This document shows positions 46,057 through 53,071 of a DNA stretch of 64,000 bases, piece by piece. Within the stretch, counting starts at the first letter, position 1, and each line of letters begins with the position of its first letter. The DNA is taken from sequence record NC_048045.1; one strand, given 5' to 3'. A model generated the notes under the pieces. It was not told the origin of the DNA. It ran no database searches and saw nothing but the letters and a program-made list of their open reading frames with translations. Position numbers and translations under genes: made by a program.

Positions 46057-46832
46057 TGGCCATCCAGAACCCCCACTCCACCACGCCGGGCGTCATGCCC
46101 CACCTGACGCCGGGCGAGATCGGCGTCAACAAGGCCGACGACATCCTCTGGTTCCGGTCCGAGGGCCGCCGCGTGCCGATCATCCTGAGCGATCTGGATC
46201 GGGCTCCGCCGCTCGACGGCCTGACGGGCGCGCCGCTGACCCTGGAAGGCGGACAGCCGATCTGGAACGCGCATCTGGCCCCGTCCTCCGTGGTCAATGG
46301 TCAGGTCAAGGTCGATCTGCCGCCGGCGACGGGCCTGCACGCCATGCCCAGCGTCCTGCTGCAAGGCCTGGGCGCCGATCGCGCCCTGGCGGCCAACGAT
46401 CTGGACCTCTCGCCCTTCTACGTCCGGTCCGACTCCATCACCCTGACCCAGTTGGCGTTCAGCGTGCGCTCGGCCGGCGCGCCGGCGATGCGGGTGGGGA
46501 TCGTCGACAGCTTCGGTGTGGTCCAGGCCGACATTCTCGTCGCCGCGCCCGTGGTCGGGGCCAATGTGGTCAATCTCTCGCCGGTGCTGACGCTCCAGCG
46601 CGGGGTCTACCGCACGATCCTGGCGACCACCGGCGCGGTGACGATCGGCGTGGTCACGGGCGCGCGCATGGAGCAGGGCTGGGACATCATCGGGGACACG
46701 CCGTCCTTCATCCACGGCTACAGCGGCTCGAAGAACACCGGCGGCGGGATCGGCAGCTTGCCGGGCCTGACCGCGCGTCGCTCCGGTGTGCCGGGGCAGG
46801 ATCATGCGGTTCTGATGCGCTGGACGGCGTAG
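46056..46832 (+). CDS. Fibre-associated protein with Mtd_N-like motif
   Basis: LTPGEIGVNKADDILWF; TAATG coupling. Confidence 0.7.
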   Translation: MAIQNPHSTTPGVMPHLTPGEIGVNKADDILWFRSEGRRVPIILSDLDRAPPLDGLTGAPLTLEGGQPIWNAHLAPSSVVNGQVKVDLPPATGLHAMPSVLLQGLGADRALAANDLDLSPFYVRSDSITLTQLAFSVRSAGAPAMRVGIVDSFGVVQADILVAAPVVGANVVNLSPVLTLQRGVYRTILATTGAVTIGVVTGARMEQGWDIIGDTPSFIHGYSGSKNTGGGIGSLPGLTARRSGVPGQDHAVLMRWTA

Positions 46833-46934
46833 CGGGGAGAACCTGATGGGGCTTTGTATCGCCGGAGGGCGAGGGACGGGTCGCTCCCCGGCGGCCCACC
46901 CGCTTCCTATAGACCGGCTCGCCTCGGCCCGCAA

Positions 46935-46980
46935 GACGTGAATCTTGACATGGTGGAAGATCGAGGTTAACCTACGCGCT
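46935..46980 (+). promoter_or_regulatory. Promoter with GANTC operator
   Basis: GACGTGAATCTTGACA-N15-GTTAACCT. Confidence 0.7.
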
Positions 46981-47003
46981 AATCTGGAGTTTCGAGCGCC
47001 ACC

Positions 47004-47273
47004 ATGGCCGAGCTTGTCCGCATCTATCACCCCGAGACGAACGAGCCGTTCGACGTGATTCCGTCGACCGCCGAACGTCTGCGCCTGGGTGATGGGCACG
47101 ACGGGCTGGTCTGGCTCTCGCAGCCCTTCGAGCGCGTCGCCGTCGAAGCCGCGCCGGAAGCCCCCAAGGGGCGAGGTCGTAAGCGCGTCAGCGCGATCGT
47201 CGAGGCGGAAGACGCCGAATCCGACGGGTCGTGGCGTGATGCGCCGACCGAGGAAGACCTCGAAGCCGCGTAA
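47004..47273 (+). CDS. Hypothetical protein, acidic with RGRGRK-like patch
   Basis: GGAG SD. Confidence 0.75.
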   Translation: MAELVRIYHPETNEPFDVIPSTAERLRLGDGHDGLVWLSQPFERVAVEAAPEAPKGRGRKRVSAIVEAEDAESDGSWRDAPTEEDLEAA

Positions 47274-47317
47274 GGCGCTTCGACTTCCACTCTGCTGAAA
47301 TTCGGTCTCAGTCCCAT

Positions 47318-47393
47318 GTCGGTCTAGCTCATGGGGTAGAGCGGCGGTCTCCAAAACCGCGCGTGGCAGGTTCGAGTCCTGCGTCCGGCGCCA
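47318..47393 (+). tRNA. tRNA-Trp(CCA)
   Basis: Anticodon loop CT-CCA-AA, TTCGAG T-loop, CCA end. Confidence 0.9.
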
Positions 47394-47397
47394 TTTC

Positions 47398-47472
47398 GCA
47401 TCCGTAGTATATAGGTGATTACAGCGCGTTGCCAACGCGTAGAGTCGGGTTCGAGTCCCGACGGATGCTCCA
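47398..47472 (+). tRNA. tRNA-Gly(GCC)
   Basis: TT-GCC-AA loop, U73, CCA. Confidence 0.9.
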
Positions 47473-47478
47473 ATCCAT

Positions 47479-47552
47479 GCGGGTATAGCTCAAAGGGAGA
47501 GCTACTGCCTTCCAAGCAGAAGATGCGAGTTCGAGCCTCGCTATCCGCTCCA
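47479..47552 (+). tRNA. tRNA-Gly(TCC)
   Basis: CT-TCC-AA loop, U73, CCA. Confidence 0.9.
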
Positions 47553-47555
47553 AAC

Positions 47556-47850
47556 TCGTGGTGAGGTGAGAACGCCCTCCTCATGCACCGCTTCGGCGGT
47601 AAAGTAGGCTCCGGCCGAAGAGATGCGGGAACAGGGGACCCCGCCACCACGAACGAAGTGCGCCCCAGGTGCGCCTCTGACCGAGAAAGCCCGCTGGCCG
47701 TGGGTGAAGCGTAGGGTCAAGCGTCTGGGTCCCCGTCCTCCAGGACCGGCGAAGGCCATATGCGCCGAATTCCTGGTCAGGATCGCATGAGGGGAGCGCT
47801 GGCGCCGGCCCAGCAGGGGAGGGTTAAAAGCCCAGCCGGCATTTTTCTTC
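47556..47850 (+). ncRNA. Candidate structured RNA
   Basis: TCGTGGTG/CACCACGA closing helix, UUCG hairpin, terminator-like end; family not recognised. Confidence 0.4.
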
Positions 47851-47860
47851 AACAACAAGC

Positions 47861-47895
47861 TTGACAGCCGTCGAGTTTCGTGAGAGCCTCTTCAA
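47861..47895 (+). promoter_or_regulatory. Promoter of the Glu/Asp tRNA unit
   Basis: TTGACA-N15-GAGAGCCT. Confidence 0.65.
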
Positions 47896-47899
47896 CATT

Positions 47900-47962
47900 A
47901 TGACGCACCTCCTGACCCGTTACGAACGCGAGGCCACCGGCCTCGATACCACCACCGCCTAA
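47900..47962 (+). CDS. Putative leader peptide MTHLLTRYEREATGLDTTTA
   Basis: ATG just after the promoter; alternative CGAGGCC/GGCCTCG pairings. Confidence 0.55.
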   Translation: MTHLLTRYEREATGLDTTTA

Positions 47963-47994
47963 AAGCGGTTTTGGTCCGAGGCCTCTTGTCATGT

Positions 47995-48072
47995 GGCCCG
48001 GTCGTCTAGCGGTTTGCAGGATACCTGACTTTCAATCAGGTGAGCGGAGTTCGAGTCTCCGTCGGGCTTCCA
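47995..48072 (+). tRNA. tRNA-Glu(TTC)
   Basis: CT-TTC-AA loop, CCA. Confidence 0.9.
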
Positions 48073-48093
48073 TCCCCAACTCCTTCTGAGCTT

Positions 48094-48168
48094 GGTGCGT
48101 TCGTATATCGGTTAATACTCCCGCCTGTCGAGCGGAGAAGAGGGGTTCGACTCCCCTACGCACCGCCA
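48094..48168 (+). tRNA. tRNA-Asp(GTC)
   Basis: CT-GTC-GA loop, G73, CCA. Confidence 0.9.
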
Positions 48169-48220
48169 GCTTCCCTCGTATCAATCCAGGTTCCCAGCGC
48201 CGGCTTTTCCGCGCGCCTGG

Positions 48221-48457
48221 ATGCACGAGGCTTCCATGTTCTTCGATACCTCCTCGCAGTCGAGCGCCGCGCTCCTGCGTCACGTCTCCACCCAATCTCC
48301 GTATGCGGAAGCGGCTCGCACCGAGTTGCTGTCCCGAGGCCTCGTTCCGCTCCTGACGCGGTTCAACGGCTGGCGCCTCGCCCCGAGCGTGCCGTTTCCG
48401 CAGCACCTCATCCCGCGCCCCGATCCGCTCGCGAAGTTCACGTGGCGGGCGGGATGA
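48221..48457 (+). CDS. Hypothetical protein (start may be 48236)
   Basis: ORF between tRNA units; GAGG SD before 48236. Confidence 0.55.
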   Translation: MHEASMFFDTSSQSSAALLRHVSTQSPYAEAARTELLSRGLVPLLTRFNGWRLAPSVPFPQHLIPRPDPLAKFTWRAG

Positions 48458-48476
48458 AAAATATTCACCACGACAC

Positions 48477-48527
48477 TTGACATCCGTTGGGAGTTGTGAG
48501 AGCTTATGGACTGTCACGGATCACGAC
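48477..48527 (+). promoter_or_regulatory. Promoter of the Pro-to-Ser tRNA unit, with a 15-bp operator variant at the start site
   Basis: TTGACA-N15-GAGAGCTT; GTCACGGATCACGAC 48513-48527. Confidence 0.65.
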
Positions 48528-48598
48528 ACTCCTCGGAGTGCAAAAGCGTGATCCTTCGTTATTCACGGCCGCCAGCGGGTGGCCAGTCGAGAGTTGTC

Positions 48599-48736
48599 AT
48601 GTTCGCCTTGTCGCATCTCAGCCTGAGCACGAAAGCCGCCTCCCCGGCGTCGCTTTCGCTTGCCCTGCTGGCGACGGCCACGAAGCCCTCGACCAAGCCG
48701 ACCACCTCGGCCTCGCACTCGACGGAAACCCTCTAG
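48599..48736 (+). CDS. Putative attenuator leader peptide (45 aa; 42 residues S/L/A/T/K/P/H)
   Basis: Composition mirrors the 14 downstream tRNAs; followed by competing helices and a terminator. Confidence 0.8.
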   Translation: MFALSHLSLSTKAASPASLSLALLATATKPSTKPTTSASHSTETL

Positions 48737-48801
48737 GGTTTTTCGTCTCGGGTGCAGGCCTTGGAGCCGCACCCGCTACCTACATCCTGTAGACCTAGCG
48801 C

Positions 48802-48839
48802 AAGGCGGCTCCTCACCAGGGAGACCGCCTTTTCTTTTT
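48802..48839 (+). terminator. Attenuator terminator
   Basis: AAGGCGG-CTCC/GGAG-A-CCGCCTT plus TTCTTTTT; 5' arm can instead pair with GGAGCCGC 48763-48770. Confidence 0.85.
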
Positions 48840-48851
48840 CGCGTTGATCAT

Positions 48852-48927
48852 CGGGGTGTAGCTCAGTCGGTAGAGCGCTCGGTTCGGGACCGAGAGGCCG
48901 TGGGTTCAAGTCCCGCCACCCAGACCA
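48852..48927 (+). tRNA. tRNA-Pro(CGG)
   Basis: TT-CGG-GA loop. Confidence 0.9.
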
Positions 48928-48934
48928 ACGCCAT

Positions 48935-49011
48935 CGGGATGTAGCTCAGTTTGGGAGAGCGCGCGGCTGGGGGCCGCGAGGCCGCAGGTTCAAGTCCTGC
49001 CACCCCGACCA
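48935..49011 (+). tRNA. tRNA-Pro(GGG)
   Basis: CT-GGG-GG loop. Confidence 0.9.
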
Positions 49012-49016
49012 ACAAC

Positions 49017-49089
49017 GCTGTTGCGCGTGGTTTCGCGCCCACCCCTTGGTATGGGGTGGTAGAAGGTTCAATTCCTTCCAGCAGCACCA
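49017..49089 (+). tRNA. tRNA-Thr(GGT), short atypical D-arm
   Basis: TT-GGT-AT loop, G1-C72/C2-G71, A73, CCA. Confidence 0.7.
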
Positions 49090-49094
49090 GCAAC

Positions 49095-49164
49095 GCCGAT
49101 GCCTCTGGGAGGACGCGCCTTTCGTAAGGGTGCGAGGTGGGTTCAATCCCCACTTTCGGCTCCA
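49095..49164 (+). tRNA. tRNA-Thr(CGT), short atypical D-arm
   Basis: TT-CGT-AA loop; 70 nt; CCA. Confidence 0.65.
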
Positions 49165-49205
49165 GCATAGCGAGATCAAGGAGAAATCGCAAGCAGACAG
49201 AACAT

Positions 49206-49288
49206 GGATCGGGAACGTAAAGCTAGGCCGGGCCAGCAGTGGGCTCTTAATCCACGCGTAAGGGGTTCGACTCCCTCCCGATTCTCCA
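49206..49288 (+). tRNA. tRNA-Lys(CTT), 8/4-type fold
   Basis: CT-CTT-AA loop; GGATCGGG/CCCGATTC acceptor, 4-bp T-stem. Confidence 0.7.
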
Positions 49289-49293
49289 ACAAT

Positions 49294-49383
49294 GCACAAG
49301 TGACCCGAGCGGCGAAGGGCGTCGACTTTTAATCGACTAGGCGTCCAGCCTCACCGAGGGTTCGAGTCCCTCCTTGTGCTCCA
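49294..49383 (+). tRNA. tRNA-Lys(TTT) with long variable arm
   Basis: CT-TTT-AA loop; AGGC/GCCT V-arm; 90 nt. Confidence 0.8.
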
Positions 49384-49386
49384 TGT

Positions 49387-49473
49387 GCGAATGTGGCGGA
49401 ACTGGTAGACGCGCCGGCCTCAGGTGCCGGTACCCTTCGGGGCGTGTGGGTTCGAGTCCCACCTTTCGTACCA
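49387..49473 (+). tRNA. tRNA-Leu(CAG)
   Basis: CT-CAG-GT loop, long V-arm. Confidence 0.9.
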
Positions 49474-49480
49474 ACGACAT

Positions 49481-49568
49481 GCCTTGCTGGCGGAAGTGGT
49501 AGACGCACTGTTCTCAAAAAGCAGGCCGGGCGACCGGGCTCTGGGTTCGATCCCCAGGTGAGGCACCA
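49481..49568 (+). tRNA. tRNA-Leu(CAA)
   Basis: CT-CAA-AA loop, long V-arm. Confidence 0.9.
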
Positions 49569-49575
49569 AGACTGA

Positions 49576-49663
49576 TGCGAAGTGGCGGAAACTGGTAGAC
49601 GCACCGGCATGAGAGGCCGGCGCCCTTCGGGGCGTGAGGGTTCGAGTCCCTTCTTCGCGACCA
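49576..49663 (+). tRNA. tRNA-Leu(GAG)
   Basis: AT-GAG-AG loop, long V-arm. Confidence 0.85.
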
Positions 49664-49665
49664 AT

Positions 49666-49731
49666 GTCCCGATCGGGAAGATTCCAGGCGGCGCGGCGCG
49701 CGCGACACCGGAATCGTCCCGATCGGGAAGA
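49666..49731. repeat. 16-bp direct repeat GTCCCGATCGGGAAGA with palindromic core
   Basis: Copies at 49666 and 49716; GATTCC/GGAATC stem between them. Confidence 0.85.
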
Positions 49732-49743
49732 CGACGAGATTAT

Positions 49744-49814
49744 GCTGATCGCCGCTGGGCGGGGAGCGGGTTGTGTCCCCGCTAGGCACGGTTCGATCCC
49801 GTGGGTCAGTACCA
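49744..49814 (+). tRNA. tRNA-His(GTG), compact D-arm, A73
   Basis: TT-GTG-TC loop; 7/5 stems; A73 as in alphaproteobacterial tRNA-His. Confidence 0.65.
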
Positions 49815-49819
49815 GATAC

Positions 49820-49890
49820 GGGGTATGCGCAGGGCGCAGCCATCCTTTGCAAGGACGGCGGGGTGGGTTCGAGTCCCACATACTCCACCA
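49820..49890 (+). tRNA. tRNA-Ala(TGC), compact D-arm
   Basis: G3:U70 pair, TT-TGC-AA loop. Confidence 0.8.
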
Positions 49891-49894
49891 ACAT

Positions 49895-49984
49895 GGAAGG
49901 TCAACCGGACAGGCGCGCCGGGACTGCCTCGAAAGCAGATCGCACTCTCCGGGGTGTGGGGATCGAGACCTCGGCCTTCCTCCA
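49895..49984 (+). tRNA. tRNA-Ser(CGA), 8/4 fold
   Basis: CT-CGA-AA; GGAAGGTC/GGCCTTCC acceptor. Confidence 0.85.
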
Positions 49985-49988
49985 ACAT

Positions 49989-50078
49989 GGTGAGCGAACG
50001 GGACAGGCGTGCCCGGTCCGCCTGGAAAGCGCGACGCACTCTCCGGGGTGTGGGATTCGAGTTCTCCGCTCACCGCCA
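49989..50078 (+). tRNA. tRNA-Ser(GGA), 8/4 fold
   Basis: CT-GGA-AA; GGTGAGCG/CGCTCACC acceptor. Confidence 0.85.
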
Positions 50079-50082
50079 ACAT

Positions 50083-50172
50083 GGTAGGCGAACCGGACAG
50101 GCGTGCCGGCGCCGTTTGCTAAACGAGCGGCACTCTCCGGGGTGTGGGATTCAAGCTCTCCGCCTACCGCCA
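50083..50172 (+). tRNA. tRNA-Ser(GCT), 8/4 fold
   Basis: TT-GCT-AA; GGTAGGCG/CGCCTACC acceptor. Confidence 0.85.
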
Positions 50173-50214
50173 TTTTGATGTTGACGCCGGCCCCTGCCGA
50201 TGTCATACGTCACG

Positions 50215-50460
50215 ACAGAGCGAACGCCCTTGGCCGGGTTGGTGGATGTGCCGGTTGCATCACGCCCCGTCGAGCCCTAGTAGCTCTTGAGTGGAGTTTT
50301 CCGCCTCCCTCCCTAACAAGGAGGCGGACCCCAACATCGCGATCCAGTGATCGTCGGCGACGGGCGCCGTTAGAGCCCCCTTGCGCGCGGAAACGCTGCG
50401 GAGGGGATCGTCCCGACCACATTCGCTCGCCGGCAAAAATCTTCGCCGGCGTTAACTTTT
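50215..50460 (+). ncRNA. Candidate ~215-nt structured RNA with its own promoter and terminator
   Basis: TTGACG 50181; GAGCGAA/TTCGCTC closing helix; GCCGGC hairpin plus T-run. Confidence 0.45.
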
Positions 50461-50464
50461 CTTC

Positions 50465-50500
50465 TTGACCTTTGAAAGGTCCTGGTGTAGTTTCCCCGTC
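50465..50500 (+). promoter_or_regulatory. Promoter of the Tyr-to-Arg tRNA unit
   Basis: TTGACC-N15-TGTAGTTT; ATG 7 nt later suggests a leaderless mRNA. Confidence 0.7.
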
Positions 50501-50596
50501 ATGAGCAAGTCGTACCGCCAATTCGTGCAGATTCAGGTCGTCCGGAATTTCCGGGCGGGCCGTTCGCGCATGGATGATGGCGGGACCTTTATCTAG
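50501..50596 (+). CDS. Putative attenuator leader peptide MSKSYRQFVQIQVVRNFRAGRSRMDDGGTFI
   Basis: Codons 5-18 are all read by the downstream tRNAs; contains an 18-nt antiterminator strand. Confidence 0.85.
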   Translation: MSKSYRQFVQIQVVRNFRAGRSRMDDGGTFI

Positions 50597-50622
50597 GTCC
50601 AGACACCTCAACCCAATTCGCG

Positions 50623-50660
50623 AAAGGCCCGCCTGGACACCCAGGCGGGCCTTTTTCTTT
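50623..50660 (+). terminator. Attenuator terminator
   Basis: AAAGGCCCGCCTGG-ACAC-CCAGGCGGGCCTTT plus TTCTTT. Confidence 0.9.
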
Positions 50661-50717
50661 TCCGTTTCGCTGATCCGAGGAGATCGCAGATGAACAACGG
50701 GGGCTAGTCCTCCACAT

Positions 50718-50802
50718 GGATGCTTAAAGCTGGAGGGCTCCAGCCGGGGGCTGTAAACCCCCTCTCTTCGGAGGAGTGGTTCGATCCCACAAGCATCCAC
50801 CA
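50718..50802 (+). tRNA. tRNA-Tyr(GTA), 8/4-type fold
   Basis: CT-GTA-AA; GGATGCTT/AAGCATCC acceptor; GTGG/CCAC T-stem. Confidence 0.75.
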
Positions 50803-50803
50803 T

Positions 50804-50878
50804 GGTCATGTAGCTGAGACAGATTAGCGCCGGCGTGAAATCCCGGAGACGAGGATGCGAGCACCTCCTAGACCACCA
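50804..50878 (+). tRNA. tRNA-Phe(GAA), degenerate T-loop
   Basis: GT-GAA-AT loop, CCA. Confidence 0.65.
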
Positions 50879-50883
50879 ACAAC

Positions 50884-50959
50884 GCCCGATGAGCCAGATG
50901 GGAAGGCACCGCTTTGACATGGCGGCATTGAGAAGGTTCGATTCCTTCATCAGGCACCA
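50884..50959 (+). tRNA. tRNA-Val(GAC)
   Basis: TT-GAC-AT loop. Confidence 0.85.
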
Positions 50960-50964
50960 ACCAC

Positions 50965-51040
50965 GCAAGTGTAGCTCAGTTGGTAGAGCAGCGGACCGAT
51001 AATCCGCCCGTCCCTGGTTCGAGTCCAGGCATTTGCACCA
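50965..51040 (+). tRNA. tRNA-Ile(GAT)
   Basis: CC-GAT-AA loop. Confidence 0.85.
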
Positions 51041-51047
51041 TTTCTGA

Positions 51048-51122
51048 TGTGGCATAGCTCAGGGGTAGAGCGTCCGCTTGATAAGCGGGAGGTCGTGGGT
51101 TCGAAACCCCCTGCCACTACCA
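51048..51122 (+). tRNA. tRNA-Ile(GAT)
   Basis: TT-GAT-AA loop. Confidence 0.85.
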
Positions 51123-51153
51123 ATTCCAGGCCGGCGGAGAGAGCCGGTCCTGT

Positions 51154-51227
51154 AGGCGATTAGCTCAATGGTAGAGCGGGGGTGCCACAAACCTCAGGCG
51201 TAGGTTCGATTCCTACATCGCCCACCA
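51154..51227 (+). tRNA. tRNA-Val(CAC)
   Basis: GC-CAC-AA loop (C33 atypical). Confidence 0.75.
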
Positions 51228-51232
51228 ATTGT

Positions 51233-51306
51233 TGAGGGTTCGTCTAATGGTAGGACGCCTGGGTCTGGTCCAGGTAATCTAGGTTCGAGTCCTAGCTCCT
51301 CATCCA
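51233..51306 (+). tRNA. tRNA-Gln(CTG)
   Basis: GT-CTG-GT loop; U1-A72. Confidence 0.85.
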
Positions 51307-51312
51307 AGTTGT

Positions 51313-51386
51313 TCTCGGGTGGTCTAATGGTAGGACGGCTGGTTTTGGTCCAGCAGGTTGGGGTTCGATTCCTTGGCCGAGAGCCA
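51313..51386 (+). tRNA. tRNA-Gln(TTG)
   Basis: TT-TTG-GT loop; U1-A72, G73. Confidence 0.85.
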
Positions 51387-51403
51387 ACTGCTTTTGAGTT
51401 TAT

Positions 51404-51478
51404 TCCAGTCAATGCACAAGGTGTGCAGCGGCACTGTTAATGCCTGTGAGCCCGGTTCGATTCCGGGGTCTGGAGCCA
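51404..51478 (+). tRNA. tRNA-Asn(GTT)
   Basis: CT-GTT-AA loop; G73. Confidence 0.85.
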
Positions 51479-51503
51479 ACACGCCGGCCTAGGCCGGTCA
51501 TGC

Positions 51504-51586
51504 GCCCTGGTAACCGAGGGGGATTACGAATCCCTTAGTCGTAGCAGGAGTTGAAAAGGGTGGTTCGAATCCACTCCAGGGTGCCA
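51504..51586 (+). tRNA. tRNA-Arg(ACG)-like, D-arm absent, long variable region
   Basis: TT-ACG-AA loop; acceptor, T-arm and CCA intact. Confidence 0.55.
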
Positions 51587-51593
51587 AATCTAT

Positions 51594-51676
51594 AGCGCGC
51601 AGGCCGAGCAGGATCATCGTCAGGCGTCGCCCTCCGAAGGCGAAGAGGCCCGGTTCGAGTCCGGGGCGCGCTGCCA
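51594..51676 (+). tRNA. tRNA-Arg(CCG), expanded D region
   Basis: CT-CCG-AA loop; 7/5 stems; CCA. Confidence 0.7.
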
Positions 51677-51679
51677 CAT

Positions 51680-51757
51680 GCGCGGGTAGCTCAATGGAGC
51701 CAGAGCAGCCGTCTTCTACACGGTGGGTTGGGGGTTCGAGTCCCTCCCCGCGTGCCA
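51680..51757 (+). tRNA. tRNA-Arg(TCT)
   Basis: CT-TCT-AC loop; CCA. Confidence 0.8.
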
Positions 51758-51789
51758 AACTTGACGGGCGATGCCGAATCGCTCAACGT

Positions 51790-52080
51790 CGACCCTGGCT
51801 CTCGGTGGGCCACGATTGCACGTCGCCGGTGCCCTGGCCGTACACCCAGGGAGCAGCCCGGCGGCGTTCCAACACGGTTTCTGGACGATCTTCGAACGCG
51901 GCTTGCCGTGGAGGGGTGCTGGATGGGGCCGAGGTAGGAGGAACCATCGAGCATCTCCTCATCCTGGACTGGGCCTCCTGGGGGCTCCTCCGGGTCAAAC
52001 AGGGCCTGACCCGACCCCGGAGATGCGCCGACCTTGATCACCCAGGATCGCTGGGTCGGTGGAAAGGGTCTGAAATTTTT
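51790..52080 (+). ncRNA. Candidate ~280-nt structured RNA
   Basis: TTGACG 51761; GACCCT/AGGGTC closing helix; several internal hairpins; T-run after. Confidence 0.4.
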
Positions 52081-52124
52081 CTGGCTCTTATGTGTTGACA
52101 CGCATTTCAGAGCCGGCTACAACC

Positions 52125-52260
52125 CTCCTCGTAGAGCGGCGCTGGGGCCAGGAGGCCCCGTCGTTGAGCCTCTGCGTTGTCGTCAGAAACGGCCCGCCGG
52201 CTTCCCGCCGCGCGGGCCGTTTCGTCATGGGCGTCATGCGACCTTGAGTCCACCGTGGGT
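52125..52260 (+). ncRNA. Candidate small RNA or structured leader
   Basis: TTGACA-N15-GCTACAAC promoter at 52095; 12-bp stem 52186-52223. Confidence 0.35.
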
Positions 52261-52263
52261 AGT

Positions 52264-52305
52264 GTCGTGAATCTTGACTTTCGACCACCTTTCCGGTAGC
52301 TTCCC
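52264..52305 (+). promoter_or_regulatory. Promoter with GANTC operator
   Basis: GTCGTGAATCTTGAC 52264-52278. Confidence 0.7.
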
Positions 52306-52347
52306 CTTCATCACCAACGCTCATAAGTCGGGGACTAGAGAGCCGCA

Positions 52348-52746
52348 ATGTCGCAAGACCACACCGGCTCCGCAACGCAGGGCCAAGAACACATCTTCCG
52401 TAAGCTGGATGAGCTTGGCGCAATGCACATGCGTACCCGCGAGGACATGGCCGAGGTCAAGGAGAAGGTGAAGACCATCGCCTCCTCTCAGGAGCGCTTT
52501 GAGCGCGACGTCTGGCGTGAAATGGATATTCGCCACACCGAGACCAAGCAGGCCCTGGCCGATATCAAGGATCACACCAACGAGCGGATCAGCGAGATCG
52601 AGTCCAAGGTGAACACCATCCGCGAGGAGCGGATCGCCGAAAAAGCCCAATGGCGCGGCCCCGAAAAGGTCATCGCCGCCATCGTCGCCCTGGCGGGCGG
52701 CGTCACGGCGATCGGCGTGCTCTGGAGCATCTTCAAGCCGCACTAA
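52348..52746 (+). CDS. Coiled-coil protein with C-terminal TM (holin/XhlA-like candidate)
   Basis: Long coiled coil then VIAAIVALAGGVTAIGVLWSIF. Confidence 0.6.
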   Translation: MSQDHTGSATQGQEHIFRKLDELGAMHMRTREDMAEVKEKVKTIASSQERFERDVWREMDIRHTETKQALADIKDHTNERISEIESKVNTIREERIAEKAQWRGPEKVIAAIVALAGGVTAIGVLWSIFKPH

Positions 52747-52780
52747 TCCTACAGTCAAGCTTGTTCCCCTGCGGCCAGAA

Positions 52781-52825
52781 GTCGCGCTTCTTGACACCCC
52801 TGGTCGGCCCGAGCTAACCATATGC
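52781..52825 (+). promoter_or_regulatory. Promoter with an operator variant lacking GANTC
   Basis: GTCGCGCTTCTTGACA-N16-GCTAACCA. Confidence 0.6.
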
Positions 52826-52849
52826 CATCTGTTCCTGGGGAGTTCCTAG

Positions 52850-53071
52850 ATGGCTGCTGCGCTTACCCTCGTCTCGCGTGAGACGGATTATTCGACCACC
52901 ACGGAAATCGATCCGGACGCGGCGCATCAGCGCCTCATCCTGGTCCTGAACACCGCCGCAGAAGCGGGCCTTGGTGACATGACGTTGGAAGTCAAAGAGG
53001 AGATCGAGGCCCTGCTCAAGCAGGCGTCTATCGAACTCTCGAATTGCCGGATCGTGGGGGGAGTTCCTTAA
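52850..53071 (+). CDS. Hypothetical protein
   Basis: GGGAG SD. Confidence 0.7.
   Translation: MAAALTLVSRETDYSTTTEIDPDAAHQRLILVLNTAAEAGLGDMTLEVKEEIEALLKQASIELSNCRIVGGVP

Follow-up and report, generated by a model that had tools for sequence, protein, structure and literature searches.

A candidate ribosome-mediated transcription attenuator upstream of a tRNA gene cluster in Caulobacter phage CcrBL10

We analyzed a 64-kb window (64,000 nucleotides, one strand) of the genome of Caulobacter phage CcrBL10 (hereafter BL10; NC_048045.1) and consider it reasonably probable that positions 48477–48840 form a ribosome-mediated transcription attenuator, which would gate read-through into a 14-gene tRNA sub-operon (Table 1). 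The case is entirely computational and no experimental data are available: what is said below of translation, the start of transcription, terminator efficiency and read-through is inference from sequence. An array of the same kind, comprising promoter, small ORF, hairpins, terminator and tRNA order, is conserved in eight clades of phages infecting Caulobacter and Brevundimonas. The element is treated here as a variant of the leader-peptide attenuators; since the genes to be regulated are tRNAs rather than biosynthesis or synthetase genes, no named operon family is assigned. A scan of IMG/VR and metagenomes for further relatives returned only known isolates and one 1.2-kb contig. Comparable leaders were not found in the distant syntenic phage DSS3P8, whose small ORFs adjoining tRNAs resemble, by motif alone, the DUF1127 family.

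Table 1. Features of the leader and tRNA region in the BL10 window (positions are those of the window).
Feature	Position	Strand	Description
Leader 1b	47861..47994	+	Promoter motif at 47861; ORF 47900-47962 (MTHLLTRYEREATGLDTTTA); precedes tRNA-Glu and tRNA-Asp
Probable promoter of leader 2	48477..48505	+	TTGACA, 13 nt, then GTGAGAGCTT; no experimental mapping
Two 5' UTR hairpins	48518-48554, 48567-48584	+	From the minimum free energy (MFE) fold
Leader 2 ORF	48599..48736	+	45 codons, ATG to TAG; proposed decoding-speed sensor
Extended stop-codon hairpin	48709..48760	+	Segment A 48709-48731, segment B 48736-48760; stop codon in loop; predicted to sequester GGGTGCAGGCC
Hairpin P2, putative anti-antiterminator	48750..48774	+	GGGTGCaGGC...GCCGCACCC; would hide GGAGCCGC
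Putative antiterminator	48763..48812	+	GGAGCCGC (48763-70) with GCGGCTCC (48805-12); encloses P3 (48775-48799)
Intrinsic terminator	48802..48840	+	12-bp GC-rich stem (48802-48831), then TTTTCTTTTT; -19.5 kcal/mol
tRNA cluster, putatively gated	48852..50172	+	14 units, from ARAGORN, GenBank and alignment to relatives' tRNAs
Cluster order (units uncalled by tools in parentheses)			Pro-CGG, Pro-GGG, Thr-GGT, (Thr-CGT), (Lys-CTT), Lys-TTT, Leu-CAG, Leu-CAA, Leu-GAG, His-GTG, Ala-TGC, (Ser-CGA), (Ser-GGA), (Ser-GCT)
Thr-CGT unit	~49093-49165		By eye only: anticodon loop and acceptor stem
Lys-CTT unit	~49205-49290		Anticodon loop, acceptor stem and T arm aligned to relatives' called tRNAs
Three Ser-like units	49895-50170		Anticodon loops, acceptor stems and T arms aligned to relatives' called tRNAs
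Leader 3	50466..50664	+	Promoter TTGACC-N17-TAGTTT; ORF 50501-50596; terminator 50622-50655 with T-run
Leader 3 antiterminator segment	50550-50562		Inside the ORF, codons 17-21

The leader 2 ORF translates as MFALSHLSLSTKAASPASLSLALLATATKPSTKPTTSASHSTETL and coincides with the annotated hypothetical coding sequence HOT99_gp335 in NC_048045.1, a member of PHROG 12742 (function unknown). A preliminary description of this DNA had singled out its bias toward seven amino acids, and a recount agrees: Ser10, Leu8, Ala8, Thr8, Lys3, Pro3 and His2 make up 42 of the 45 residues. Among 62,071 stop-free six-frame windows of 45 residues in the 64 kb, this one ranked first for content of the seven, and the next independent locus reached 39/45. 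The binomial check proposed in that description, run against a proteome proxy (set frequency 0.452), gave ~1e-11. Random sequence with the base composition of the ORF had a mean in-set fraction of 0.59, and none of 20,000 such sequences reached 0.93.

The bias persists in relatives. Across 15 phages from eight clades, with nucleotide differences of up to ~48%, the in-set fraction is 82–93%; codons 2 to N-10 are 86–100% in set, and composition is relaxed in Brevundimonas phages over the final 10 codons, where ORF and RNA switch overlap. The ORF is open in each of the 15 phages, with an ATG or GTG start preceded by SD-like motifs. Three-base periodicity was detected in every clade (p = 7e-7 to 4e-4), GC3 is 0.82–0.95 against a GC1 of ~0.5, and G is nearly absent from codon position 2. 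When drift was simulated blind to codon phase but with base composition kept, 0.65–0.71 of the residues remained in set and a stop codon arose in ~50% of runs; the observed values have p = 0.0004–0.003 per lineage under this expectation. These comparisons support the view that the ORF behaves as a translated frame, which has not been shown experimentally.

Two other frames over the same DNA were rejected. ORF 48487–48792 (101 aa) is also open in Bajun, Gurke, Bambus and CcrSC; it is closed in Colossus, its GC3 is only 0.64, and stop codons are rare in it by construction because its codon position 1 is the G/C-rich position 3 of the leader. The antisense ORF 48563–48772 (GC3 0.47) shares the leader's codon register and is merely its shadow.

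The preliminary description placed 14 tRNAs behind leader 2. ARAGORN called only nine, within 48852–49890. The other five (5/14, non-canonical), namely Thr-CGT, Lys-CTT and the three Ser-like units, were not called by ARAGORN, Rfam or GenBank and stand only as tRNA-like units recognized by alignment to relatives or by eye. The D regions of the Lys-CTT and Ser-like units are unusual; CcrSC has an annotated tRNA-Thr (CGT) at the place matching the Thr-CGT unit of BL10. Cluster order is kept in Colossus, CcrPW, CcrSC, C1, Bajun, Gurke, Kikimora, Bambus and Kabachok, and no protein gene lies between leader 2 and 50200. A match between leader codons and cluster anticodons had also been claimed. It is borne out in that the leader holds one or more cognate codons for every one of the 14 anticodons and that, under strict wobble rules, 36 of the 45 codons are read by the cluster (exceptions: ATG, TTC, GAA and six GCC); it falls short for the six GCC (Ala) codons, which tRNA-Ala(UGC) does not normally read. 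ARAGORN detected neither tRNA-His nor tRNA-Thr in phiCbK-type phages, though His and Thr codons are kept in their leaders. A covariation involving Trp, suggested by Bertelyvirus phages in which a tRNA-Trp ends the cluster and the leader carries a Trp codon, was discarded as not significant because the Bambus leader has a Trp codon without a tRNA-Trp.

Transcription of leader 2 is inferred to start near 48512. The motif TTGAC-N14-GTGWGA occurs twice in the 64 kb (47861 and 48477), where 0.05 sites are expected. The homologous leaders of Colossus, CcrPW and Bajun are preceded by it, those of CcrSC and Gurke by variants; sequence conservation starts at the 48477 promoter. The second of the two 5' UTR hairpins, which are confined to the phiCbK-like group, carries a compensatory C-G to A-U change in Ccr5 and Swift as well as a G-U to G-C change.

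The helices of the proposed switch lie at and beyond the end of the ORF. Their positions had been given correctly in the preliminary description, including TAG at 48734, GGGTGC at 48750-55, GCACCC at 48769-74 and both arms of the antiterminator. A helix at the ORF end that competes for GGGTGC had been proposed there as well, and is recovered as the stop-codon hairpin, the MFE structure of both 48700–48845 and 48702–48816. Complementarity between segments A and B (the relay helix) exceeded that of shuffled sequences in BL10 (p = 0.008) and Gurke (p = 0.046); in the Colossus, CcrSC, Bajun, Bambus and Kabachok leaders it was no better than chance. BL10 and phiCbK types differ by compensatory changes in the inner stem, and in Bajun, Gurke and CcrSC the stop codon likewise falls within a hairpin loop. 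P2 appears in the MFE structure of the full leader and again when a ribosome occupies the stop codon; its sequence does not vary in the phiCbK group, and a GGGTGC/GCACCC hairpin is also found in CcrSC.

The antiterminator pairing of GGAGCCGC with GCGGCTCC proposed earlier withstood comparison with shuffled sequences and with other clades. The pairing is the MFE structure of the partial transcript 48702–48816, and that of the full phiCbK leader when segment A is free. In BL10 the duplex was calculated at -18.8 kcal/mol, against -12.3 +/- 2.2 for dinucleotide shuffles (p = 0.006); the same p value was obtained for Bajun and Gurke, Bambus gave 0.036, and the Fisher combination over six clade representatives is 8e-6. 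Equivalent pairings in other clades have different sequences but keep complementarity to the 5' arm of the terminator, and P3, which the antiterminator encloses, has a compensatory U-A to A-U change. The terminator is canonical in six of eight clade representatives, with equivalents in phages including Bajun, Gurke, Bambus and Kabachok and a weak U-tract in Colossus and CcrSC; a rho-independent terminator is annotated here in phiCbK, Swift and Karma. Only 11 nt separate its end from tRNA-Pro, and there is therefore no room for a promoter between them. P2, antiterminator and terminator are invariant within the phiCbK group, hence no within-group covariation could be found for them. An Rfam E-value search of 46500–53000 placed no family on 48477–48840 except a chance-level microRNA match (E = 0.99), and ARAGORN found no tmRNA in the window.

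In the mechanism that we propose, a host-type promoter would produce a ~330-nt leader RNA carrying the 45-codon ORF. That this ORF is written near-exclusively in codons of the downstream tRNAs can be read from the DNA; the later steps are inferred. A fast ribosome reaching the last ~10 codons or the stop codon would unwind the stop-codon hairpin, leaving GGGTGCAGGC free to form P2 with GCCGCACCC. P2 would then hide GGAGCCGC, the terminator would fold, and transcription would end 11 nt before tRNA-Pro. Were aminoacyl-tRNAs for Ser, Leu, Ala, Thr, Lys, Pro or His scarce, the ribosome would lag in the first ~33 codons, the hairpin would persist with GGGTGCAGGC tied up, and GGAGCCGC could pair with the emerging 5' arm of the terminator, allowing RNA polymerase to enter the tRNA genes. 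The long leader would in effect act as a speedometer for the full codon panel, with tRNA synthesis driven by demand.

The same tRNA region holds two sister leaders. Leader 3 shares with leader 2 the plan of promoter, small ORF, terminator and tRNAs, and its codons likewise match its own tRNA set. Its ORF, 50501–50596 (MSKSYRQFVQIQVVRNFRAGRSRMDDGGTFI), is rich in F/V/I/Q/N/R and is followed by tRNAs for Phe, Val, Ile, Ile, Val, Gln, Gln, Asn (identity uncertain), Arg and Arg. Leaders 2 and 3 each match their own tRNA set with Fisher p values of 6e-6 to 2e-9 in four clades; the BL10 row of this test used a frame-shifted leader 3, and a hand count with the correct 50501–50596 peptide gives 42/1 versus 6/17. 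Unlike leader 2, leader 3 has a classical four-segment layout with the antiterminator inside the ORF, a leaderless or nearly leaderless mRNA, only 31–32 codons, a core run of YRQFVQIQVVRNFR, and normal synonymous divergence together with an in-frame codon insertion. Its antiterminator (11–13 bp) and the two terminator arms covary (p <= 0.002 for every clade; Fisher 4e-9), and the four-segment switch would serve the F/V/I/Q/N/R tRNAs in a like manner. In leader 1b, the stop codon is in the loop of a long hairpin immediately ahead of tRNA-Glu and tRNA-Asp. phiCbK and Gurke retain the leader 1b ORF, in which the ERE codons have changed synonymously; its enrichment in Glu/Asp is not significant.

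It had been inferred beforehand that a ribosome at the end of the leader 2 ORF favors the terminator and one held upstream the antiterminator. A ribosome-mask scan reproduced this behavior, as a model, in BL10, phiCbK, RBC57, BL57 and Colossus, and gave no clean switch in Bajun, Gurke or Kikimora; equilibrium modelling does not recover this sign in the Brevundimonas phages. With the A site among the final 11 codons, terminator probability exceeded 0.85 in four phiCbK-like phages, and in Colossus this held for the final six codons; with the ribosome upstream the probability was mostly <0.4, with excursions to ~0.9 in BL57 at some mid-ORF positions. The folds of the partial transcript and of phiCbK contain the predicted alternative structures. 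At equilibrium, full-length BL10 RNA keeps the terminator in both states, therefore the switch must be kinetic. With a ribosome at the stop codon, the partial-transcript MFE structure is still the antiterminator. Shuffling segment A altered terminator probability modestly (5–11 of 60 shuffles were as low as native), which makes this equilibrium test a weak one.

The same parts might work with the opposite sign, which we hold to be unlikely. A ribosome near the stop codon would in that case block the 5' arm of P2, or its refolding, and so permit the antiterminator, whereas a lagging ribosome would lead to termination, with tRNA output following translation capacity. The Brevundimonas phages lend this some weight: their P2 5' arm starts only 9–15 nt past the first stop-codon base, which puts it within a ribosome footprint or at its margin, Bajun favors the antiterminator under any mask, and in Gurke and Kikimora terminator probability drops with the A site 5–7 codons before the stop. 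The leader 1b ORF, moreover, ends within a terminator hairpin. In BL10, however, the P2 5' arm begins 16 nt past that base, narrowly clear of the footprint; stalling leads to read-through in the mask scans of the five Caulobacter phages and in the classical geometry of leader 3, and positive feedback on tRNA supply would have no obvious use.

Should the ORF instead encode a small, low-complexity functional protein or peptide (PHROG 12742), the terminator would be leaky or a processing signal and the tRNA match would follow merely from biased composition. All relatives have the ORF annotated as a coding sequence, it has its own PHROG family, the motifs LSH and TET recur across clades, and attenuator leader peptides can act in trans, as peTrpL is reported to do (PMC7298713). 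The pattern of substitution nevertheless points elsewhere. Between BL10 and phiCbK, leader 2 has zero synonymous changes, against a pS of 0.37 in neighboring gp076, while its residues are freely replaced within the seven-amino-acid set; in the phiCbK group, dN/dS is 1.3–3 for the leader 2 ORF against 0.2 for gp076. Between distant clades leader 2 dN/dS is ~1, but the gp076 control is saturated there too (0.6–0.9), so only comparisons within the phiCbK group are informative. The switch helices also overlap the ORF end, with the conserved TET codons inside the stop-codon hairpin, and leader 3 independently matches a different tRNA set. As judged from these alignments, selection acts on the seven-amino-acid composition of leader 2 and not on its peptide sequence, and we regard a peptide function as quite improbable.

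Rho-dependent polarity is likewise a poor, and in our view very unlikely, account of the region. The C-rich, G-poor RNA of the ORF (C 43%, G 24%) would load Rho unless shielded by translation, and stalling or a lack of translation would lower transcription of the tRNAs. Base composition is alike in all clades, and Colossus and CcrSC lack a strong U-tract. Yet C-richness alone explains neither the periodicity nor the in-set fraction (0.59 in composition-matched random sequence, as noted above), the RNA of the ORF has a highly structured predicted fold (z = -5) and would thus be a poor Rho loading site, and a canonical intrinsic terminator and an antiterminator are conserved. Least credible, to the point of being highly improbable, is a structured non-coding RNA with an incidental ORF, whether as a stable sRNA that ends with the terminator or as an element for processing or spacing: the leader fold is very stable (z = -5.05), three hairpins have compensatory changes, the leader is 92% conserved at the nucleotide level and the whole cluster ~85%, and phage tRNA clusters can carry small stable RNAs such as T4 species 1 and 2, but the region has no Rfam family, periodicity and high GC3 are kept in every clade despite turnover, and phase-blind drift would have closed in about half of all runs a frame that is open in 15/15 phages.

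As a proposed attenuator in which stalling would give read-through, leader 2 resembles the leader-peptide systems (trp, his, leu, thr, ilvGMEDA, ilvBN, pheA, pheST) in having a promoter-proximal short ORF rich in relevant codons, mutually exclusive antiterminator and terminator, an intrinsic terminator before the regulated genes and a stop codon beside the switch. Sensing of several amino acids is known from the thr leader (Thr and Ile) and the ilv leader (Ile, Val and Leu), and a multi-helix relay from the his leader. The element differs in being phage-encoded and in that the genes it would regulate are tRNA genes rather than enzymes or synthetases. Its 39–48 codons are nearly all 'regulatory' and cover seven amino acids and 14 anticodons, in place of a run of one to three; its antiterminator lies downstream of the ORF, in a relay from stop-codon hairpin through P2 and antiterminator to terminator; and the untranslated RNA is predicted to read through, not to super-attenuate. 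T-box riboswitches, too, sense the state of the tRNA pool and set a choice between terminator and antiterminator. They differ in binding uncharged tRNA directly, without translation, through a specifier loop and T-box sequence, and in regulating synthetase, biosynthesis and transport genes, mostly in Firmicutes; the T-box covariance model had no match in the Rfam search of 46500–53000.

The E. coli tRNA-Phe genes pheU and pheV were reportedly described in Nucleic Acids Research in 1983–85 as having a Phe-codon leader and a putative attenuator-like structure; to our knowledge, attenuation was never established experimentally. If so described, these leaders would be the nearest conceptual precedent, differing in that they concern one amino acid and one chromosomal tRNA gene. 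Our literature searches found nothing on attenuator-like leaders of pheU/pheV, and no published precedent for attenuation logic at tRNA genes.

Why phages carry tRNA genes, and how the levels of those tRNAs are set, is an open question; the explanations generally offered are that they match codon usage, make up for the decay of host tRNAs or allow escape from anticodon nucleases. It seems to us about an even chance that the Dolichocephalovirinae phages possess a family of 'codon-panel' attenuators, in which each tRNA sub-operon has a leader ORF written in the codons of its own tRNAs, so that decoding speed is sensed per codon group and tRNAs are made on demand. This would be the first documented ribosome-mediated attenuation of tRNA genes. 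Comparing the codon content of small ORFs with downstream anticodons offers a search rule for similar elements, and the leader could be a compact part for synthetic circuits reporting decoding capacity for chosen codons. The idea is testable in C. crescentus and phiCbK, a standard model system. If it is true, the leader, by spelling out in its codons the tRNAs that follow, would provide direct, demand-sensing feedback on tRNA supply, and this built-in sensor could raise phage tRNA when starvation or tRNA-cleaving defence nucleases deplete the host pool.

The coordinates used here are identical to those of bases 1–64000 of Caulobacter phage CcrBL10 (NC_048045.1, Poindextervirus). The phage tRNA region, in which ARAGORN called 22 tRNAs, contains the leader that precedes an array of 14 tRNAs for Pro, Thr, Lys, Leu, His, Ala and Ser (leader 2). 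Its ORF, a hypothetical CDS in the annotation (HOT99_gp335), is a member of PHROG 12742, of unknown function; the original phiCbK genomics paper lists the tRNAs and reports no regulatory element at this region (PMC3556154). The parts of leader 2, their order, conservation and pairing potential are established at the level of sequence. Its reading as an attenuator is well supported in silico, and there are no bench data.

Coordinates of features in and around the tRNA region
Feature	Position	Content
tRNA region	47318–51757	
Skipping-rope RNA	47556–47652 (+)	Rfam RF02924
Leader 1b	47861–47994	20-codon ORF, MTHLLTRYEREATGLDTTTA
Leader 2 start-codon helix	48586–48601/48680–48693	
Leader 2 ORF	48599–48736	MFALSHLSLSTKAASPASLSLALLATATKPSTKPTTSASHSTETL
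Segment A/segment B (stop-codon hairpin)	48709–48731/48736–48760	
P2	48750–48774	GGGTGC/GCACCC
Antiterminator	48763–48770/48805–48812	GGAGCCGC:GCGGCTCC
P3 (inside antiterminator)	48775–48799	
Leader 2 terminator	48802–48831	followed by TTTTCTTTTT
Thr(CGT)-like unit	49093–49165	
tRNA-Lys genes	49198–49383	CTT-like, TTT
Ser-like units	49895–50172	three, in tandem; loops CGA, GGA, GCT
Leader 3	50466–50664	
Leader 3 promoter	directly 5' of ORF	TTGACC-N17-TAGTTT
Leader 3 ORF	50501–50596	31 codons, MSKSYRQFVQIQVVRNFRAGRSRMDDGGTFI
Leader 3 terminator	50622–50655	strong
Mini-ORF	50691–50708	ATG AAC AAC GGG GGC TAG (MNNGG)
tRNAs behind leader 3		Phe, Val, Ile, Ile, Val, Gln, Gln, Arg, Arg, and one Ile(aat) by ARAGORN
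tRNA called Ile(aat)	51404–51478	anticodon loop CT-GTT-AA

The preliminary description had claimed that 42 of the 45 residues of the leader 2 peptide come from S, L, A, T, K, P and H, the amino acids of the 14 tRNAs (hereafter the set), and this count was exact. The binomial test that it had proposed gave a probability of ~1e-11 relative to a proxy for the proteome, in which the set has a frequency of 0.452. Of the 62,071 stop-free 45-residue windows that the 64 kb holds in its six frames, the peptide ranked as the most extreme; the runner-up independent locus had 39 set residues. Random sequence with the C-rich base composition of the ORF had a mean of 0.59 in the set, and none of 20,000 trials reached 0.93. 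Each of the 14 anticodons has a cognate codon in leader 2, in line with the codon–anticodon match that had been claimed, and 36 of the 45 codons are read under strict wobble rules (unread: ATG, TTC, GAA and six GCC).

The figure of 14 tRNAs comes with a caveat. ARAGORN called only nine. The other five, which are tRNA-like sequences with odd D regions, are Thr-CGT, Lys-CTT and three Ser-like units. Lys-CTT and the Ser-like units were identified by alignment with called tRNAs of relatives, and Thr-CGT by eye only, on the basis of anticodon loop and acceptor stem. The Thr(CGT)-like and Ser-like units, whose D regions are non-canonical, were missed in CcrBL10 by ARAGORN, Rfam and GenBank annotation alike. 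Both tRNA-Lys genes are 87–90 nt long with a long extra arm as in class II tRNAs, a form that is unusual for Lys and common to all relatives. We also noted a skipping-rope RNA (48.6 bits vs a gathering score of 36.7) within the tRNA cluster, directly 3' of tRNA-Gly(tcc); phiCbK has none at the corresponding place. Skipping-rope RNAs are tRNA mimics according to a 2026 preprint. A phiCbK tRNA with anticodon tcc (sequence L002, 6114–6191), called Gly by ARAGORN, occupies the position of tRNA-Arg(tct) in relatives and may represent a one-base anticodon switch. In the Brevundimonas phages Gurke (L012, 4512–4729) and Bambus (L021, 3878–4009), Rfam tmRNA matches below threshold (~32 bits vs a gathering score of 47; E ~2e-9) lie between Ser tRNAs.

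The region was found in 26 phage records at 86–100% identity, and the same architecture is present in far more distant Dolichocephalovirinae, where blastn matches the tRNAs only. Leader 2 peptides were recovered from Colossus and CcrPW (MTFSTHKPSTLKPATGAASLAHASLLTPATSKPSLSRSL), from Bertelyvirus CcrSC and C1 (MTRIHTTLPTAKPASTGALTLASWPASSKPLLRHSAVLA) and from Brevundimonas phage Bajun (MTTLSHKLSLKSAPSALLSLAHAPATLKSTPATVASTSETFS); Gurke and Kikimora, and Bambus and Kabachok, also have the architecture. Over the 15 phages compared, the set fraction is 82–93%, with GC3 of 0.82–0.95 and GC1 of ~0.5. Three-base periodicity is strong in every clade (chi-square p 7e-7 to 4e-4), codon position 2 being nearly without G and position 3 nearly without A. 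When drift away from the BL10 ORF was simulated until the observed divergence was reached, with base composition retained and phase ignored, the set fraction dropped to 0.65–0.71 and about half of the runs gained a stop codon (observed fractions vs drift, p=0.0004–0.003 per lineage).

Between BL10 and phiCbK, the ORF carries six non-synonymous and no synonymous changes; the adjoining comparison gene gp076 has a pS of 0.37 and a dN/dS of 0.2. Within the phiCbK-like group, the inferred evolution of the ORF is unlike that of a normal protein. Replacements remain within the set (T/L, S/T/K, L/P/S, A/P, K/S/T, T/H), and the set share is 86–100% at codons 2 to N-10; the RNA switch overlaps the final ten codons, and these are looser in Brevundimonas phages (4–7/10 in the set). 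We conclude from these sequence patterns that the frame is read as codons, with selection on codon choice and not on peptide sequence.

The leader 2 terminator is canonical and ends 11 nt 5' of tRNA-Pro; the tRNAs are therefore reachable only via read-through from the upstream promoter. The promoter motif TTGAC-N14-GTGWGA occurs only twice in the window, 5' of leader 2 and 5' of the Glu/Asp leader (leader 1b), vs 0.05 expected, and is also found in Colossus, CcrPW and Bajun. The leader 2 RNA fold is unusually stable (-145.6 kcal/mol, z=-5.05). In the MFE fold, an SD-like GAGAG and the start codon are paired with codons 29–32 of the ORF itself, which could be translational self-occlusion after RNA completion; changes in this helix among relatives are one-sided only.

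The helix coordinates in the preliminary description were all correct. The antiterminator has a pairing energy of -18.8 kcal/mol vs -12.3 ± 2.2 in dinucleotide-shuffled sequence (p=0.006). At the equivalent place, segments of different sequence that are likewise complementary to the terminator 5' arm are present in Bajun (CUGGGGCCU, p=0.006) and in Gurke and Bambus (both GGGGCC, p=0.006 and 0.036), with weaker support in Colossus (p=0.11) and CcrSC (p=0.14); the Fisher combined p over clades is 8e-6. Pairing of the ORF 3' end (GGCCTCGCACTC) with GGGTGCAGGCC, which competes with P2, was significant in BL10 (p=0.008) and Gurke (p=0.046) and not in the other clades (combined p 0.013). In the phiCbK group, P2, antiterminator and terminator are invariant, so compensatory changes there are limited to three other helices: a 5'-UTR hairpin, the stop-codon hairpin and P3.

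The proposed helix logic was borne out by partial-transcript folds only for a lagging ribosome, with the ORF end free, when the extended stop-codon hairpin and the antiterminator formed; with a ribosome at the stop, the MFE was still the antiterminator. In full-length folds, a ribosome mask at the stop codon did yield P2 and the terminator, and the MFE of phiCbK RNA with a free ORF end comprised stop-codon hairpin and antiterminator. For full-length BL10 RNA, the MFE contains the terminator in either state, which means that the switch has to be kinetic. We slid a 28-nt mask over the ORF and computed terminator probability, which was mostly <0.4 with the mask upstream and >0.85 with the A site in the last 11 codons (BL10, phiCbK, RBC57, BL57). 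Colossus showed the same switch with the A site in the last 6 codons; this profile was not seen in Bajun, Gurke or Kikimora. Shuffling segment A provided a weak control only.

Leader 3 precedes tRNAs for F, V, I, Q, N and R. The tRNA called Ile(aat) by ARAGORN and GenBank is, from its anticodon loop, probably tRNA-Asn(GTT); its homologues in Colossus and CcrSC are annotated Asn. F, V, I, Q, N and R residues make up 17/30 of the leader 3 peptide (background 0.274, p=7e-4) and 13/14 of its core YRQFVQIQVVRNFR (hand count). The peptides of leaders 2 and 3 are each rich in amino acids of the tRNAs that follow them and poor in those of the other group (Fisher p 6e-6 to 2e-9; phiCbK, Colossus, Bajun, CcrSC), and BL10 counts go in the same direction (42/1 vs 6/17, hand count). 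Codons 17–21 (TCCGGGCGGGCCG) can form an 11–13 bp duplex with the terminator 5' arm. In Colossus, Bajun and CcrSC, this segment and the two terminator arms change together (p<=0.002 in each, Fisher 4e-9), giving three-way covariation over four clades. Synonymous divergence of the ORF is ordinary (pS 0.34, dN/dS 0.37), and the phiCbK group has an in-frame CGC insertion. By its predicted pairings, leader 3 is a textbook four-segment attenuator and adds greatly to the credibility of the proposed reading for leader 2. A mini-ORF with an AGGAG Shine-Dalgarno lies between the leader 3 terminator and tRNA-Phe; Rogue, BL57 and Colossus conserve it, and the phiCbK group has lost it by deletion.

Leader 1b shares the leader 2 promoter motif. 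A long hairpin directly 5' of tRNA-Glu and tRNA-Asp, annotated as a terminator in phiCbK, has the stop codon of its ORF in the loop. The ORF is conserved in Gurke, with ERE codons that differ synonymously from BL10; Glu/Asp enrichment of its peptide was not significant.

We propose that translation speed over ~33 set codons of leader 2 races RNA polymerase. A fast ribosome would melt the stop-codon hairpin, so that P2 could form and termination would follow; one that lags would leave that hairpin in place, and the antiterminator would capture the terminator 5' arm and let the tRNA genes be transcribed. The sign of this response is the least secure step, and a model of opposite sign is the main rival. 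Three further rivals, namely a small peptide with a function of its own, polarity through Rho acting on the C-rich RNA, and a non-coding RNA, fit the data less well: the periodicity, synonymous sites that are frozen while residues are exchanged freely within the set, a match specific to each cluster, and conservation of the terminator together with its antiterminator.

On this reading, leader 2 works like the leader-peptide attenuators that control pheST and the trp, his, thr and ilv operons, and it has four of their defining features. For a further feature, control by ribosome position, the modelling gave mixed results, with the switch seen in some phages and not in others. Its proposed targets are tRNA genes, a kind of target outside every named family. 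Leader 2 had no T-box or other Rfam match, and full-text literature searches yielded no account of tRNA-gene attenuation in phages or bacteria; attenuator-like leaders were reportedly proposed in the 1980s for the E. coli tRNA-Phe genes pheU and pheV. If leader 2 is an attenuator of the sign that we propose, the outcome would be negative feedback on tRNA supply.
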